Origin: Chrysemys picta bellii
Taxonomy: Eukaryota
Direction of reading: 5' to 3'
NCBI RefSeq assembly: GCF_011386835.1
Contig: NC_088791.1
Coordinates: 322,214,001 to 322,278,000 of the forward strand
DNA: 64,000 nucleotides
Shown piece after piece: positions 43,348-61,526 of this stretch. How positions within the stretch are numbered: position 1 is the stretch's first letter; every line of letters starts with the position of its first letter. The translations under genes and the position numbers were made by a program. Below the pieces are notes generated by a model, which worked only from the letters and a program-made list of their open reading frames with translations, was not told the origin of the DNA and did not search any database.

Positions 43348-44202
<855 letters not shown>

Positions 44203-51989: not shown

Positions 51990-54900
51990 CTGAAATATGG
52001 GGAAATAACGCATATTTAATACCAGCATCTACAAAATGACTAATAGACATCTTTAATATTTACTAAATTAGTTGCAAGCTTTTACATTATGTTCTTGCTC
52101 AAATCTATGAAGGGAAATTTAGTGGTTAGGACTTGATCCATGTCATCTCAACCCTAGAAATGGTTGGACATTGCAACATTTTTATAGAGAGTACTGAATT
52201 ATTTTTCAAAAATTGGGGCTAGTTTCTCCTTATTTCCATCCACTAAATTACAACTGCATCACAGAGTCACAGTAATGACTCCAAAGTTAAGGTTGTAAAA
52301 CAATTTTCATTGTCATCAGAGATGCACCTCTCTCTCTTAGCTAATTAATATTTTTACCTCATGTATTTTTTAAATAGAAGAACTGCAGAGTAAAAAAGAG
52401 TGATTATCTTAAGGATGCAAAAAGCCAATAACCTTAACCAAGAGATGTGGACGTCCATCCATTTATAGTTGAAGTGGTTTATATATTTATTTAACACATT
52501 TTTCCAATAAGGAATGTTTTGTGCATAGCTATAAAAGGGTGTATCTAACTGGTGGGGTGTGATTTTTAAAGTGCACTAATGTATTGCAGGGTCTACACAG
52601 AGCAATTAATATGCACCACATTAATGAATGCACTTTAAAAGTCACACCCCCATAGAGCGCATTTCCCCAGTAGGGACACAAGCCCTAACTTAGGAGTGTT
52701 TTCTGTTTACTGCATCTTTACATTTCTAAACTACCAACCTATTTGCTGTGGAGCTGTCAATTTCCTCAGTTATAATATCTGCAGACATCCCAATGCTTTT
52801 ATTCACCATTAAAGTTTTTCAAAATTGCATCCGTTTCTCTCAATTTTATATTGACATTTATTTTTACATTTCTTCAGAAATCAGATAATATAGCCTCTAT
52901 CAATTTTCACTAATTCCACATAATTTTTATTTACATCAACTCATTATGGTGCACTTGAGTCTTGTAGAGTCCATACTGCATACAGTTCTGAGAAATGTGT
53001 TAACTCACAAAACGCCTTATCATGAAGAGGTTCAGTTTCTGAGACAGATTCTGCTAGAGTCTAATAACTAATTAGGTGAGTCAGACTTTTAAGCATTAGT
53101 ACTTCTGTTCATGTTGTACACCACAACAGCACAGAACAGGTGGCCTTGGCAACCTGTCCTCTTTTACCAAAGCTTCTACTTATTGAAAAGAGACTGTGAA
53201 CTGGACAAAAAACAAAACAAAAACCCAAACTGCTCCAATCAATACAATCTCTTTAACCAATAGGCACTTGGCTTCTTTTGGTTTGATGATATCATCTGTA
53301 GGATGGTGAAGCTGTCATCAAATCTACATGCTGTGGACTGGGTCTCTCTTCTAGTACATGGTATTTTAGCAGAGATTTTTAAACTAAATCTTTTCAGATA
53401 TTACAACTGTATCTGCAGGTCCTTCTAGTGTTAGTTGCTTTGTATGAAAATGTTCAGCAGCCTTTCACTTGCATGTTTCTTAATTCAAAAAAGGAAATTC
53501 TAAGTTACCAAAATAGATGGTGAAAAGGGGTGTTGTTTTAAATGGGCTAAAAATTCAGAGGTATTTTCTGCTTCCTGTTGGTTTCCTGGAAGGAAATTAT
53601 AATTTTCAGCTTCAGTGTTTGTTTCTAGTACATAATGCTTTGGAAGCACCTCTATTAAAACTCTTAGGCGGAAATTGTGATCCTATTGAAGTCAATGGGA
53701 CCAGGATTTTACCCTTATGCTCTGACACGTTCATGTGAAAACAAGTCTAAGAGCCGCAATTCATTTTTCCCTAAGAGTTTTAGGGAAAAATGACTAACCT
53801 TCTTAGATACAGTGATATTTGTCCAAATCTCTGCATCTATATTTCACACGTAATTGTTAAACTGGGAAACTTCCATATTCCATAAATGGCTATTTTAACC
53901 TAGATCTAAATTGTAAGTGATAAAATATTTAAAGGTTTGAAATTTCCTTTTACTAAAAAGCATGTTGTAATAATTTGAATTTTGGGTAGAATAGTGCTTG
54001 GACTCGCAGAATTTGTTAGGTACAGGCTGTTGTAAGAAGGGGGGACAGGAGAAGATCATTAAGGGCTGCCACTTCAGGTGTTAGGAGGGCTTTTCTGGAG
54101 ATCTTTCAGCTTAGACTAAAGCCCCTGTGTGTACACAAACTGAGTATTACAGAAACAACCACAATAGATAGAGAGTGGGGGAGAAGAAGAAAATGAGATT
54201 AGTGATGTAAAATGATGTACAACTTTAAGGGAGAAGTTGAAGGGTTTTACTCTAATGAGGGAGGAGCTAGGAAGCCAGTGAAAGGATTTAAAAAGAGGGT
54301 AATATTATCAGAGAGCGGTTTGAGGAAAACAGGGGTAGCAGCAGCATTTTGGATAAACTGCACATGAAAAGGAGACATCAGAAAGGAGACCATTATGTGT
54401 AATTTGGAAATATTGAAAAGGAAGAAGCAACAAATAAAGCCCAGGAGAGAGAAGAAACAGAGAAGAGTCTAAAATGACATCATGGTAGCAAACTTTGGTC
54501 ATGGGATTAACAAAGATCTCAGTACCTATCAAGATGAAAGATATGGGCTAGATTCATAAAAGAATGTGGGCATCTAACTGCCACCTTAGGTGCCTAAATC
54601 CCAGAATCCGGCCCCACTGGGATCACAAAACCCACACTCGGCTGCCTTCAAACATAGTAGGCACCTAAACTCACTCAGCATTTAAATTTGGCAATAAAAA
54701 AATTCTCTAGGAGCCTATGTTTCTGTCTCTACATATGCACATTGCAGCCACACCAGGAATCTGGACACCTAACCCCAGAATGATTCACAAACCAGGGAAA
54801 GATAAGCATTCATCTACCTTACTTGCCTGCAGGGCCCAATCTGTTAGGAAGCATGCTCAGAGCTCACCTACTGGATTGGGCCCCCCATAGATGCACAAAA

Positions 54901-55981
54901 TGGCCAGGGAGGGATGAGGAGGAGTTGAGGCCCAGTGCTGAATCTGATCCACTGTGCATAAATAATAACAGAATTTTTTTTGTATATGTGTAGACCCAGG
55001 ATCCCCTGCTCCAATTAAATTTTTAATGATATATCCACTATAGAATCGCTTCAACAGGAGAGACTGAAGGAGCCCAGTGGATCCCTGTTCAAATCCCTTC
55101 TCTCCGAGTGGGGGAACTTGAACTAGGGGTCTCCCACATCCCTGGTGAGTACACTACCCGCTGGGCTTTAAGTTATGAGGGAGGTCCAGCTAGTCTTCCT
55201 CCTGCTGCTTGCAAACAAAAAAACAAAAAAAAACATAGGCACCTAACACCAAGAGAGGGTTTGCATCTCAGAATCCCAAGCACAGGGACGTCTCCCTGCA
55301 GCCTCTCTCTCAGAGAGAGGTGAGGCTTAGGACACACCCCTTGCCTTGGCATCTCCCTTTGGCTAGCTTTGGCAGGTAACCAGCTAGCATGCTGACTTTT
55401 GTGAATCCCATCCTGAGGTGCCTATTGCTTCCCATTCATTGCATATGGAGCCTAAGATGCTGAATTCAGGCTTTGTCAATCCCAGTTCTTTTCTAGGCAC
55501 TAGGCAAACCAGCTAGAAATAGTCCAAAAGTTCAGCTATTTAGGTTCTACAGAGACCACCAACCTCTCCTTGGATGAAGAACTAAATGTTTGCATTGGAA
55601 AGGCTGCCACCACTTTTAGCAGACTAAAAGAACATGGAACAAAAGCTTACCAAGACCAAATGCTAATGTATCAAGCTTGCATTCTCATGTATGGTGGGAA
55701 AACATGGACAACTTATGCTCATCAGGAGAAAAGGTTAAACAGTTTCCACCTATGCTGTTTACACCGCAAACTCAAGATCAAATGGCAAGATAAAGTCACC
55801 AACACAGAGCTTCTTCAAAGGGCAAATTTACCAAGTGTGACAGCCCTGCTCAAGCACAGACGATTGTGCTGGCTGGACCATCTGAGTAGGCTGGAAGACT
55901 GAAGCATACCCAAGGACATGCTGTTCGGGGAGCTATCACAGGGAACAAGAGCAACAGGATGTCCCAAGCTTCGCTATAAAG

Positions 55982-58342
55982 CACATGTGTCAAACTCAAG
56001 GCCCGCGGGCCACATCCGGCCCGCCATACAATTATATCCGGCCCGCGAAATCGTTTTATATATCTGTTTTTAATGGCCCTGTGATATGACGCCCCAATAA
56101 CACACACTACAAATCCCATGATGCAGTGCAATTGCCGCCAACGGCAAGCCGCGGTTCAAGTTCGCGGTCTGTTGATGTATACAACGCTAATATCAAATCA
56201 AAGCTAGACCCCAACAATGGCCAAGAGAAAAATTGATTCTGAAAACCGAGGCTTTCAAAGCCGGTGGGAGAATGAGTATATGTTTACTGAAATTGCAGGT
56301 AAACCAGTGTGTCTCCTTTGCGGGAGTAATATCGCTGTAATGAAGGAGTATAACCTAAGACGGCACTACGAGACGAAACATGAGAACAAATTCAAAAACC
56401 TGAGCGCAGGACAGAAGCTACAAAAGGTAGAGGAGTTGAAGAAGAATTTGACATCCCAGCAGACGTTTTTCACCAAAGCAAAATCACAAAGTGAAGCTGC
56501 TGTGAAAGCAAGTTTCATTGTGGCCGAAGAGATCGCCAAATCAGGACGGCCGTTTACCGAGGGGGAATTCGTAAAGAATTGTATGATGAAAGTGTGCGAC
56601 GTCCTTTGTCCAGATAAAACGCGAGCGTTTGCAAATGTAAGCCTCAGCAGAAACACTGTTGCTAATCGGGTTTGTGAGATGGCGACTGATTTGAAAACAC
56701 AGTTGATTGAAAGAGCAAAAGATTTTGTTGCATACTCCCTTGCCGTGGATGAAACTACTGACGCGACTGACACTGCACAGCTGGCGATATTTATCCGTGG
56801 TGTGGATTCCAATTTGTGTGTAACAGAGGAAATACTGGACATTAAATCGATGCACGGGACAACGAAAGGAGAAGACATCTTTGGAAATGTATTTCAAAGT
56901 GTAACCGACATGAAACTGCCGTGGGAAAAACTCGTTGGACTTACAACAGATGGCGCACCTGCTATGTGTGGTGAAAAAAATGGACTGGTGGGAAGGATGC
57001 GCTCAAAGATGCGGGAGGAGAACTGTGCCGGTGAGTTGACAGTGTATCACTGCATCATACACCAGGAATCGCTGAGTGCTAAAGTCCTAAAAATGGATCA
57101 TGTGATGAACACTGTAACACAAACCGTCAACTTTATCAGAGCCCACGGTTTAAATCACCGCCAATTCCAGTCTTTTCTGCGGGAAATAGATAGCGAGTTT
57201 GGCGATATGCCATATCATACGGAGGTCCGGTGGCTAAGTCGGGGAAAAGTTCTCAAAAGACACTTTGAGCTGCGAGAGGAAATCTGCCAGTTCATGGACA
57301 GTAAGGGGAAAGACTGCACAGTTCTGCGGGATGAAAAGTGGAAATGTGAGTTGGCGTTCCTGGCTGACATAACGTCGCATCTTAGCGCTTTAAACCTTCA
57401 ACTCCAGGGACGGGAGCACATAATAACCGATATGCATGATGCAGTGAAGGCATTTCAAGTGAAGCTGCGCTTATGGGAGACACAAATGCACCAATGCAAC
57501 TTGTCTCACTTTCCCTGTTGCCAAGTAATACGGAACCAAGAAAGTGCCACAGTTTTCCCAAATGCCACCTTTGCTGAAAAACTCAGCGCGCTGCGCACTG
57601 AGTTCGCACGGCGCTTCAGTGACTTTGAGGCACAGAAAAGTAACTTCGAGCTGCTTCGCAACCCATTTGCAGTCGATGTGGAAACCGCACCTGTAGAAAT
57701 GCAGATGGAGCTGATAGAACTGCAATGTAACGGGACACTGAAGGCAAAGTACGACACTGCGGGGCCAGCACAGTTCACTCGCTTCATTCTTGAAGCGATG
57801 CCGCAGCTCCGCCAACATGCGGCTCGAATCCTGTCCATGTTTGGCAGCACATATCTGTGCGAGCAGCTGTTCTCTGTGATGAAAATTAACAAAACGTCAC
57901 ACAGGAGTCGCCTCACTGATGAACACCTGCAATCGATCCTGAGAATCTTCACAACACAGAACCTAACCCCAAACATAAACGAACTTGTTGCAAAGAAAAG
58001 ACTCCAAGTATCAGGCTCTGACTAAATAGGACAAGAAAATGGAATGTTATGATTTGTTATGATTATACTTTTGCTTTAAATTCAATTTTTTATTTATATT
58101 TTCAGATTTTTTAATATTCCAGCATGTACAGATTTTGAATGTATTGTATTGACAGGATATTTTTTTATGAAGAGCAAAATATTTTAAGTTGAAATGTATT
58201 TATTTTGGAATGATATCCTGTATTTTGGTTCATATTAATGGTTAAAAAACATAAATATTTAGTCTGTTAAATAAATGGTTATACTGTTCGGCCCGCGAGT
58301 TTTGAGTTTTGGCCCCCTGTGCAATTGAGTTTGACACCCCTG
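55982..58342 (+). mobile_element. Full-length hAT DNA transposon (Charlie/SPIN/GTF2IRD2-like group), 2361 bp
   Basis: TIRs CACATGTGTCAAACTC / GAGTTTGACACCCCTG (13/16); subterminal GGCCCG repeats; TSD CTATAAAG versus C-ATAAAG; internal AATAAA at 58270. Confidence 0.93.
56217..58025 (+). CDS. hAT transposase, 602 aa, uninterrupted
   Basis: N-terminal Zn finger (CLLC...RRHYETKH); catalytic D (AVDETTD), D (TTDGAPAM) and E (STYLCEQLFS); HCIIH (CxxH); EVRWLSRG; C-terminal dimerisation region (RSRLTDEHL); Kozak acaATGG. Confidence 0.96.
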   Translation: MAKRKIDSENRGFQSRWENEYMFTEIAGKPVCLLCGSNIAVMKEYNLRRHYETKHENKFKNLSAGQKLQKVEELKKNLTSQQTFFTKAKSQSEAAVKASFIVAEEIAKSGRPFTEGEFVKNCMMKVCDVLCPDKTRAFANVSLSRNTVANRVCEMATDLKTQLIERAKDFVAYSLAVDETTDATDTAQLAIFIRGVDSNLCVTEEILDIKSMHGTTKGEDIFGNVFQSVTDMKLPWEKLVGLTTDGAPAMCGEKNGLVGRMRSKMREENCAGELTVYHCIIHQESLSAKVLKMDHVMNTVTQTVNFIRAHGLNHRQFQSFLREIDSEFGDMPYHTEVRWLSRGKVLKRHFELREEICQFMDSKGKDCTVLRDEKWKCELAFLADITSHLSALNLQLQGREHIITDMHDAVKAFQVKLRLWETQMHQCNLSHFPCCQVIRNQESATVFPNATFAEKLSALRTEFARRFSDFEAQKSNFELLRNPFAVDVETAPVEMQMELIELQCNGTLKAKYDTAGPAQFTRFILEAMPQLRQHAARILSMFGSTYLCEQLFSVMKINKTSHRSRLTDEHLQSILRIFTTQNLTPNINELVAKKRLQVSGSD

Positions 58343-58412
58343 CATAAAGATATATGCAAACAAGATATGAAGGAATTTGGAATTGATCCTGACCAATGGG
58401 AAATCTTGGCAA

Positions 58413-58551
58413 CCATCCTTAGAGGTTTTTAAGGCCCAGCTTGACAAAGCCCTGGCTTGGATGGTTAGTTGGTGTTGGTCCTGCTTTGAGCAGGGGGTTG
58501 AACTAGATGACCTCCTGAGTCTCTTCCAACCCTAATCTTCTATGATTCTAT
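58413..58551 (+). mobile_element. PsCR1-type 3'-end fragment nested in the RTE
   Basis: ccatccttagaggtttttaaggcccagcttgacaaagccctgg...cttctatgattctat; the RTE sequence resumes after it. Confidence 0.85.
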
Positions 58552-61526
58552 AATCGTAACAAGTGGCACCATTGTCTCCATCAGGGCATCAAAGTCCATG
58601 ACAGGAGTGGCTCCTACAACTTGAAGAGAAAAGAGCTCATAGGAAGCAAGCAGCTTCCAACCAAGATACATACATTTGCAATAACCGCCAAAGATCATGC
58701 AAATCTTGGATTAGACTATTTAGTCACATGAGGTGTTGCAAACTATCTACATTATAGGCTGCAATTCCCACCATCTCTTGCAGGCAAAAGGATGCCAACA
58801 GAAGTTAAGGGTGGTGATGCTGAGCATCAGCATACCTATGTTTTTTTGTGAATCTAGCCCATGGAGTTCAGCTTTGGAAAGACTGAGTTTGAGATGGGAA
58901 TCCCACAGCCAAAAGGAGATGCCTGACTGGCAGCTGAAGAGGACAATGGCCACAGAGATTATGGGCAGAGGGGAAAGTCAAGTAAGAAATAAAGGAAAAG
59001 AATAGGGAAAAAAAGTCTTAGCCTAGAGATGGTAGTTAGTGATCTTGGTTAGGACAGTTTTAGTGGAGTGAAGAAGGCAGACTGGAGGGATCAAGGAGAG
59101 AGAGTTGAAGGAGAGTAAGTAAAACGAGAAAACAGCATATTTTAGGACTTGGAAGACAAAAGGAAGGAGAAACAGACAATTTCTGTTGTCCATAAGGAAA
59201 GAAGCAAGAATGAAGGTAAGGGAATGAGAAGGAGCAAGGAAGACGATAAAACAGCAGGGGAATGGAGTCAAGGGAACAAGTTGAGGCTTTAAAAGGTAAA
59301 TAGTACAAAGGTAAAAGTCAGAGCGGCATGAAAGAAGAAGATAGAACTAGTGAAGGGGTGAAGCAATTTTGCCAAATAATTTCTTGTTTTTAAAAGTTTG
59401 CAAGATCCTGGTCAGAGAAAGCAGTATATAAAAAGAAAAGCCAAGAAGAAGGTTTAACGAGAGTTGAAGGTAAAGGAAATCCAGCTGGAGATAGCAGCCC
59501 AGGAGTGGCTCAGAGAGTAGAAGTAAAGCTGTCTAGAAGAAAGAGGGTAGTTGAGAGGCAAAAGGAATGAAGAGTGTGGAGGAACTAATTGTAGTCTTAG
59601 CACTTTGTCCCATGTCATTCAACAGCATGGGAACAGGAACAGCTGTAGTAAAATGCAGAGAGTAAGCTAAGGCTGGGGATTAGAGTGTGGAGTGAAGGAT
59701 TTAACAGAAAGGAGAAGATAGAGTTTCTGTTACTGTTAGCTCCTTTCTTGCCATGTTCAGATTTCCTGAGGTGCCCATTTGAATACTCTGTACAGTACTA
59801 TGGAAACCATATAGCCAAGCACCACGTCTACACTACTTAAGAAAACTGCTGGGATTAGTTGTGATACTGTAACTAGTTAAATAAACTTAATATGTAACAC
59901 TATGTGCATATTAAAAAGAATATTCAAAACAATCTTTAGAAATAAAAATCTCTATTTCAGTATCTTCAGTCTGTTAATGGGGTTGTTTCAATGGCAGAAA
60001 CTGTCTTAACGCTACTTCCCAATGAAAGCTCATTTTGATGATTTCAGTATTATAGAACTGAATCAGCGTGCCCATTGGAAAGCGCTGGACATTAGAAAGT
60101 TTTAAAATTGTTTAGAATGGAGGGTGATTTAAACTTAGTCAACCGAAGTGGTTTACACAAATATTTAAAACAAGAAAATTCCAACAGGAAAGTAAATTCT
60201 TCCAGTTTAAGGCCAGATACAGCAATCCTTATTCACAAGTGACATGGAATTCAATGGAACTCCTTACTTACATGAATAAAGATTGCTTCTTCCGGCATTA
60301 GTGTCTAATTTATGGGTTGTGTGGCTAGTCTTGATTTTTAAAATTTTGCAGAATACATAACTTTGAAACAAGATTTTTTTAAATGGTCATTGTCAACCTA
60401 TGATCTATCACTGACAAACAGAATAAGCAATAGTTAAAAAAAATTAAATTGATGTGAATACCAGGTGCTGATTCAGAAAATATGGATTAGTCTTAAGCAA
60501 AATAGACAAGCTCTTTCATTCTCCAAACCAGGCAAGAATGCTCACTTTAATCCATTATGTCAAGTTAAGAAGGACCAGATTCTTACCTTTATTAAGTAGT
60601 ATTTACACTGCAAAAGTCTCACTGGTTTCATTCTGAGTACTTAAAGCGTAGGGTACTACCAGCAGAATTAAGGGTGGCAAAAATCAAGACTTAAATATTT
60701 TATTCCAGGTGACTGTGAAAGAACCAACATTTCAATCCAAAGCATCTTGTTTGGGCCTGATTTATAAGACAAACAGAGCTTGATTTTGCAAGATGCTGAA
60801 CACTAGCCTCGATCCAGCAAAATTATTAAGCACGTGCTTTGTAGGGACATGAGTTGTCCCATTGACTTGTTTTATATATCCTTTAGTGCTTAACTTCAGT
60901 GGGATTATTCACATCCTTAAAGTTAAGCATGTGTTTAAGAGTGTTGCTGGATCAGAGCCAAAGTGCTCAGCACCTTATAGGACTGAGTCCATAATGTAAA
61001 AATAAAAATTTCCATTGATATCATTTTAACAACTTTCAAACTAGCTACTTTGAATTGTGAAAGCTACATGCACCAGGGGATAGGAGATGACTCAGAAGTC
61101 TATTCTCCTGAGAGTAAAATGTTAAACTCAGAAAATAATAACTTTATTAGGAACTTATATATTTCCACAATTGGTTGATGTGATTTTATCTACTACAGTT
61201 GGAGCACTTAATCTGGTTTCAATGATATTCCCCATTTTCCATATGTAGAATAATCACTGGAACCAATCAAATGGAAATGAACTATACTGTAAATATTTAT
61301 AATGTGGCAAAAAGTTCCTTTATAAGAGAGTTGCCATTAAAACTATATTATTTTGCTAGTGAAGCATTAATGTTCTGTTTCAACTTATCTTTGATCTTAT
61401 CGCACAAAATATATTCATAAAATTCAAAGAGCGTAATTTTCAAAATGTGCACATGCAATTCTATGCACAGCTGCATAGAATTTTGTATGCATTTCTGAAA
61501 ATCTGATTCTAAATGCAACAACCTTA

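Follow-up and report, generated by a model that had tools for sequence, protein, structure and literature searches.

A full-length hAT transposon, very probably of the family hAT-6_XT, upstream of YAP1 in the painted turtle and its near-identical relative in a characiform fish

The painted turtle Chrysemys picta bellii carries a hAT transposon of 2361 bp at positions 55982-58342 of the stretch of 64,000 nucleotides analysed here (the window: NC_088791.1, 322,214,001 to 322,278,000 of the forward strand, assembly GCF_011386835.1). We consider it very probable that this element is a single autonomous, cut-and-paste copy of the family hAT-6_XT, that the family reached the emydid turtles by recent horizontal transfer, and that subsequent transposition placed this copy within the tail of an old long interspersed element (LINE) upstream of YAP1. 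To judge by its open reading frame (ORF), the window copy is coding-competent, and it is potentially active. Both the family and its horizontal passage between turtles, fishes and a frog are already known from a description of 2024 (Hassan, Galbraith & Adelson, Mob DNA 2024;15:7; PMC11008031). The present analysis adds painted-turtle copies that are full-length and intact, a further and very close carrier in the characiform fish Hoplias malabaricus, and a target preference of the Buster type.

Near-identical copies at unrelated loci

Other copies were retrieved through a protein search. The transposase of the window copy is 99% identical to XP_065444398.1, a C. picta bellii protein named 'GTF2IRD2A-like', whose 90% cluster holds two Trachemys scripta proteins. 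Three full-length turtle copies were located in this way, each flanked by a perfect target-site duplication: L001 in C. picta (CM062320.1, GCA_011386835.2; duplication AGTTAGAG), with an intact ORF; L003 in T. scripta (CM023065.1; GCATACAG), with a 1-nt insertion in codon 4; and L004 in T. scripta (CM023057.1; AGCTAGCA), again with an intact ORF. Together with the window copy they are 99.5-99.75% identical in pairwise comparisons, and their flanks are unrelated, placing them at four different loci. The two Trachemys copies are 99.62% identical to each other, and the window copy is 99.6-99.75% identical to the Trachemys copies. The youth claimed for the element in an earlier note, which had been made from the letters of the window, is borne out by this identity between loci and by the perfect duplications of L001, L003 and L004.

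Two private differences separate the window copy from the state common to the other copies: a synonymous change in codon 201 (56819) and the replacement P525L (57790). Across the turtle copies, changes in the ORF that are private to a single copy are mostly non-synonymous, and the pairwise ratios of non-synonymous to synonymous divergence (dN/dS) range from 0.34 to 1.37, on very few changes. As read from the aligned copies, this pattern fits neutral drift after insertion and not a host gene under selection.

Two further observations belong here. The NCBI gene model at the L003 locus of Trachemys (613 aa; copy at L003:7025-9385) spans ~5 kb, apparently bypassing the 1-nt insertion in codon 4. 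In addition, a Logan contig (L005:1-1203, SRR33529794) contains element positions 303-332 followed by ~1179-2349, with position 332 joined to ~1179; over its aligned parts the identity is 98.6%. This contig has the look of a derivative of the element that arose by internal deletion, and it shares one variant (element position 1447) with the Trachemys copy L004.

Ends of the element and target sites

The earlier note had reported both ends of the element, and these were found to be in place. The termini, of 18 nt each, are the short terminal inverted repeats of a hAT element: CACATGTGTCAAACTCAA at 55982-55999 (plus strand), a terminus found in the three other turtle copies, and TTGAGTTTGACACCCCTG at 58325-58342, which forms a block with the subterminal motif CGGCCCGC (58289-58342, plus strand). 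Within them lies a perfect inverted core of 13 nt (55987-55999 and 58325-58337) that has no further occurrence in the 64-kb window. The outer five bases of the two repeats differ from each other in every turtle copy, and the 18-nt termini are identical across all of these copies. The boundaries at 55982 and 58342 agree to the base with those of the three other full-length copies, and the 3' terminus is also present in the Hoplias copy (L002) described below.

On the left, the element is preceded by the target-site duplication CTATAAAG (55974-55981), which abuts the boundary common to L001, L003 and L004. On the right it is followed by CATAAAG (58343-58349), one base short of the left duplication, so that 8 bp stand against 7 bp in the window copy, and the other three have the perfect 8-bp duplications of hAT elements. 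Excising the element in silico, along with the following 7 bases, restores the frame of the LINE tail (…PKLRYKDICKQDMKEFGIDPDQWE…; …PKLRYK continuing directly as DICKQDMKEFGIDPDQWE…), and we therefore read CTATAAAG as the left duplication and CATAAAG as its right counterpart, which has lost one base.

For hAT elements of the TcBuster/Buster type, the 8-bp duplications made at the target follow the consensus nnnTAnnn (PMC3499496). TA occupies positions 4-5 in all four turtle duplications (CTATAAAG, AGTTAGAG, GCATACAG and AGCTAGCA) and in the 3' flank of the Hoplias copy (GTCTAAAC). The element thus shows the target consensus of the Buster clade, a likeness in target pattern. It shares with that clade the nnnTAnnn 8-bp duplications, but the sequences are distant and the zinc finger is of the SPIN-DOC C2H2 type according to Pfam, not BED. 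Hermes, the structural reference used below, belongs to the Ac clade and has a different target consensus.

Inside the 5' terminus, the segment 56000-56060 (plus strand) is occupied by GGCCCGC repeats, comprising the palindrome GGCCCGCGGGCC and two direct ATCCGGCCCGC units. The heptamer occurs at 56000, 56005 (minus strand), 56018 and 56040, that is, four times within 56000-56046, and once more near the other end at 58290; the other 61.6 kb of the window hold only three occurrences. By analogy with the subterminal repeats of Hermes and Ac, these are presumed to be transposase-binding sites.

The transposase gene and protein

The uninterrupted ORF of 602 aa announced in the earlier note was confirmed at 56217-58025 on the plus strand (602 codons plus stop, intronless). 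Its start codon lies in the favourable context that had also been proposed (CCCAACAATGGC, with A at -3 and G at +4), and a putative AATAAA polyadenylation signal can be read off the sequence at 58270-58275 (plus strand).

The DDE triad, the CxxH and RW motifs and the zinc finger, likewise listed beforehand, were recovered by motif, conservation and Pfam searches. The N-terminal C2H2 zinc finger (residues 14-73; 56256-56435, plus strand) is of the SPIN-DOC type (Pfam zf-C2H2_12, PF18658; 36.3 bits against a cut-off of 27.3) and is the probable DNA-binding domain. The three predicted catalytic residues, assigned from motif and conservation, are D178 in VDETTD (56748-56750), D245 in TTDGAP (56949-56951) and E549 in LCEQLFS (57861-57863), all on the plus strand, the last within the putative hAT C-terminal domain. 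Other hAT motifs are C279-H282, in HCIIH, and R338-W339. In a family alignment of 36 sequences (A1), every one of these residues, each member of the triad included, is either invariant or conserved to at least 90%.

The profile of the hAT dimerisation domain (Dimer_Tnp_hAT, PF05699) matched residues 528-575 with 19.9 bits, just under its gathering score of 21.4, and a match to DUF4371 was also sub-threshold. The precomputed Pfam assignments of the turtle protein are PF27046 (FAM200-GTF2IRD2-like), PF27073 (FAM200-ZBED5 RNase-like) and PF18658. Searches of the PDB by sequence, with the single protein or with the 36-sequence profile, found no hAT structure, and the fold search alone reached Hermes. 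An AlphaFold2 model built from 36 homologues (mean predicted local distance difference test score, 82) gave, with Foldseek, 12 best PDB matches that were all Hermes transposase (E from 1e-10 to 2e-8, probability 1.00). The model predicts a DDE transposase whose RNase-H fold resembles that of Hermes and holds an inserted helical domain; it assigns D178 to a beta strand within the RNase-H-like core, and through its match to Hermes is consistent with the presence of the C-terminal hAT dimerisation domain. Compared with Hermes (PDB 2BW3, 4D1Q, 6DWW), the predicted protein is alike in fold (Foldseek E 1e-10, template modelling score ~0.5-0.6), in the DDE, RW and CxxH set and in its putative hAT C-terminal domain, but its sequence identity is just 12-14%.

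The mechanism would be that of ordinary hAT cut-and-paste transposition. The N-terminal finger and its adjacent helices would bind the subterminal GGCCCGC repeats; the DDE core, in the manner of Hermes, would release the element by forming hairpins on the DNA that flanks it; and the element would be reinserted with an 8-bp stagger at nnnTAnnn.

A near-identical copy in Hoplias malabaricus

After the turtles, the next-best protein match came from Hoplias malabaricus (93% identity over 86% of the query). The corresponding locus, L002, aligns with element positions 404-2361 (1958 bp) at 98.3% DNA identity, or 98.7% gap-free, an alignment that reaches the final base of the 3' inverted repeat. Silent sites are expected to be saturated between a teleost and a turtle; the synonymous divergence (dS) between L002 and the window copy is 0.020. 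This identity, which takes in the non-coding sequence and inverted repeat at the 3' end, upholds the proposal of a recent horizontal transfer involving an aquatic lineage.

The Hoplias copy is 5'-truncated, bears deletions of 3 nt and 5 nt, and has 23 private substitutions spread over all three codon positions, 11 of them CpG transitions. Because of the truncation, the deletions and this CpG-transition decay, we regard L002 as a decaying insertion whose source was still closer to the turtle sequence. It adjoins a fish NLR gene on a chromosome record of 86 Mb, with no Ns at the locus. The NCBI model annotated there (542 aa; L002:4001-7763) fuses an upstream exon to the 5'-truncated, frameshifted copy. 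The 'GTF2IRD2A-like' annotations of the L003 and L002 loci are transposon copies.

In a maximum-likelihood tree of 47 family proteins, the turtle and Hoplias sequences form a clade (100% support) that is embedded among turbot, grunion, octopus and metagenome-derived sequences and lies apart from the snakes, which have a clade of their own. Other parts of the tree join a stingray to a rockfish and a bat to a frog, and place a bryozoan among fishes. Relationships within the family do not mirror those of the species. The resemblance to GTF2IRD2-like transposases of fishes, proposed in the earlier note, holds: the protein relatives are so annotated, Hoplias is closest after the turtles, and other teleosts come next, with bryozoan, octopus, stingray and snake sequences scattered through the tree.

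A metagenome scan with the 32-nt 3' terminus returned a single contig (L006:941-1062, MDSO01008529.1), which carries those 32 nt exactly but is only 78% identical over the terminal 122 nt and has nothing further in. The 8 bases that follow its terminus, ATCTAGGT, match nnnTAnnn. It is probably a related element, or a miniature derivative, in eukaryotic DNA within the metagenome. In scans of viral contigs, neither the protein nor the family alignment met a relative, a weak negative for a collection that is mostly phage.

Relation to the published family hAT-6_XT

In the published survey, hAT-6_XT was found in the turtles Malaclemys terrapin, Trachemys scripta elegans, Chrysemys picta bellii, Dermatemys, Sternotherus and Mesoclemmys, in five fishes including Scophthalmus maximus, and in Xenopus tropicalis, and was absent from other turtles (including tortoises and sea turtles), crocodilians and birds (PMC11008031). 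The threshold for membership was a nucleotide identity of 75% or more across 90% or more of hAT-6_XT_MTT, together with terminal inverted repeats and target-site duplications. The family was reported to have both of these features, a DDD/E triad and RW, and less than 1% divergence in turtles; independent entries were inferred from presence/absence tests (PMC11008031). Scophthalmus maximus is also among the protein matches of the present analysis.

The printed sequences of hAT-6_XT_MTT and hAT-6_XT_TSE, which begin …CAGGGGTGTCAAAC…TTGCACAGGGGGCCAAA…CGCGGGCCGAACAGTATAACCATT…, and the end of the former, …GACACATGTG, correspond to the window element on the minus strand, the termini being compared by eye. 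Two strings of hAT-6_XT_MTT match the window exactly in the two non-coding ends of the element, 25/25 at 58274-58298 and 21/21 at 56103-56123, in a comparison confined to these two strings and the termini. The element is like hAT-6_XT of turtles in its termini, its subterminal sequence and its transposase of ~600 aa with DDE and RW, as well as in host clade, low divergence and the reading of horizontal transfer. Furthermore, the Trachemys assembly used in that study yields copies 99.6-99.75% identical to the window copy.

Two things differ. No full-length copy was seen in C. picta bellii 3.0.4, for which assembly incompleteness was raised as a possible cause (PMC11008031), whereas the newer painted-turtle assembly contains full-length intact copies (L001 and the window copy). 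Besides, Hoplias malabaricus was not among the species of that study. Among the papers searched, PMC11008031 alone has the name hAT-6_XT, and none ties Hoplias to this element.

CpG content and age

The ratio of observed to expected CpG is 0.875 in the element and 0.29 in the rest of the window, and it falls to 0.12-0.14 in the flanking 2-kb bins (0.12 in 54001-56000). The hand count offered in the earlier note, 15 CpG in 56461-56760 and none in 52021-52320, proved exact. On our assumption of a turtle neutral rate of ~1e-9 per site per year or lower, the two private changes in 2361 bp put the age of the window copy at roughly a million years, a rough estimate with a wide Poisson interval.

Three points weigh against the main reading. 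The 3' target duplication of the window copy lacks one base, its transposase carries the private replacement P525L, and the low divergence among turtle copies is partly due to the slow substitution rate of turtles (PMC11008031).

Alternative explanations

Beyond recent transfer and insertion, we suggest only tentatively that the family may still be transposing in living painted turtles and sliders, with insertions that would be polymorphic, and that the Hoplias copy may belong to the same recent wave of transfer in New World fresh waters.

The history of entry could also have been one with a single horizontal arrival in the common ancestor of Chrysemys, Trachemys and Malaclemys, followed by vertical persistence with low-level transposition, instead of separate entries. 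We think this rather unlikely. Copies from Chrysemys and Trachemys are indeed as alike (99.5-99.75%) as the two Trachemys copies are (99.62%), and slow substitution in turtles makes old copies look young (PMC11008031). However, published presence/absence analysis showed no insertion site common to these species and found the family absent from the emydids Emys and Terrapene (PMC11008031), and the four turtle copies compared here sit at four different loci.

The remaining two explanations were rejected. On one of them, domestication would have turned the gene into a host gene of the GTF2IRD2/FAM200 type, which would owe its intact state and its high CpG to selection and hypomethylation and not to youth; we give this very little probability. 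The NCBI name 'GTF2IRD2A-like', the intact ORF and a CpG content like that of a CpG island speak for it. The element has Pfam families in common with the domesticated GTF2IRD2, FAM200 family, ZBED5 and EPM2AIP1. The latter are single-copy host genes without transposon ends, whereas the window element has inverted repeats and target duplications, and its copies, at least four in two or three genomes, occupy unrelated loci. Moreover, the non-coding ends are as conserved as the ORF, the private changes are mostly non-synonymous and one copy is frameshifted; what was found is a gene at several loci, with its ends retained and with near-neutral private changes. Cross-contamination between assemblies would yield near-identity between a teleost and a turtle, but it is scarcely credible for a Hoplias copy that is truncated, has its own 23 substitutions and two deletions and stands in a gap-free, fish-type NLR flank on a chromosome-scale record, the family having been found independently in several fish assemblies (PMC11008031).

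Genomic setting

The insertion target of the transposon is an old LINE tail, the remnant of a C-terminal ORF (55570-55981, plus strand), which resumes at 58350. The earlier note had described the surrounding repeat as an RTE full of stops; only one in-frame stop (55900-55902) occurs in the 137 codons directly upstream of the element, and the RTE class was not confirmed. A Pfam search of the flanking LINE tail gave no match. Downstream, at 58415-58565, the frame of the LINE tail collapses into a run of stops. This stretch, which includes …GAACTAGATGACCTCCTGAGTCTCTTCCAACCCTAATCTTCTATGATTCTA, is one that we take to resemble the 3' end of CR1-type repeats of reptiles and birds.

The 'host intron' of the earlier note (52021-52320) was not confirmed as such. 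The nearest identified host exon is exon 1 of YAP1, including the TEAD-binding region, at 43873-44172 on the minus strand (E 3e-32 to solved YAP1 chains), inside a CpG-rich block at 42-46 kb where observed/expected CpG reaches up to 0.74. Since this exon lies at ~43.9-44.17 kb on the minus strand, the element is situated ~11.8 kb upstream of YAP1, on the opposite strand and outside the gene.

Elsewhere in the window, a GC-rich block at 16000-20000 (55-57% GC, observed/expected CpG 0.48) contains several ORFs of 117-277 aa that overlap on the minus strand. A repeat or the remnant of a retroelement seems the likeliest identity; three of its CpG-rich ORFs, at 16.9-18.3 kb, had no match in a Pfam search. 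A run of 188 Ns, either an assembly gap or masked sequence, lies within 36500-36900.

Significance

For the family, the value of these results lies in confirmation and three small updates. Care is needed with 'GTF2IRD2A-like' gene models in turtle and fish annotations, since these are transposon copies. Among amniotes, cut-and-paste transposons with recent activity are rare, and the genomes of turtles evolve slowly. Horizontal transfer from one vertebrate class to another is clear in the case of this element, an intact hAT shared almost base for base with fishes, and the element is a natural candidate for tests of activity. If transposition were indeed ongoing in painted turtles and sliders, hAT-6_XT would be among the very few currently active DNA transposons of amniotes, and would offer a tractable system for finding the vector.

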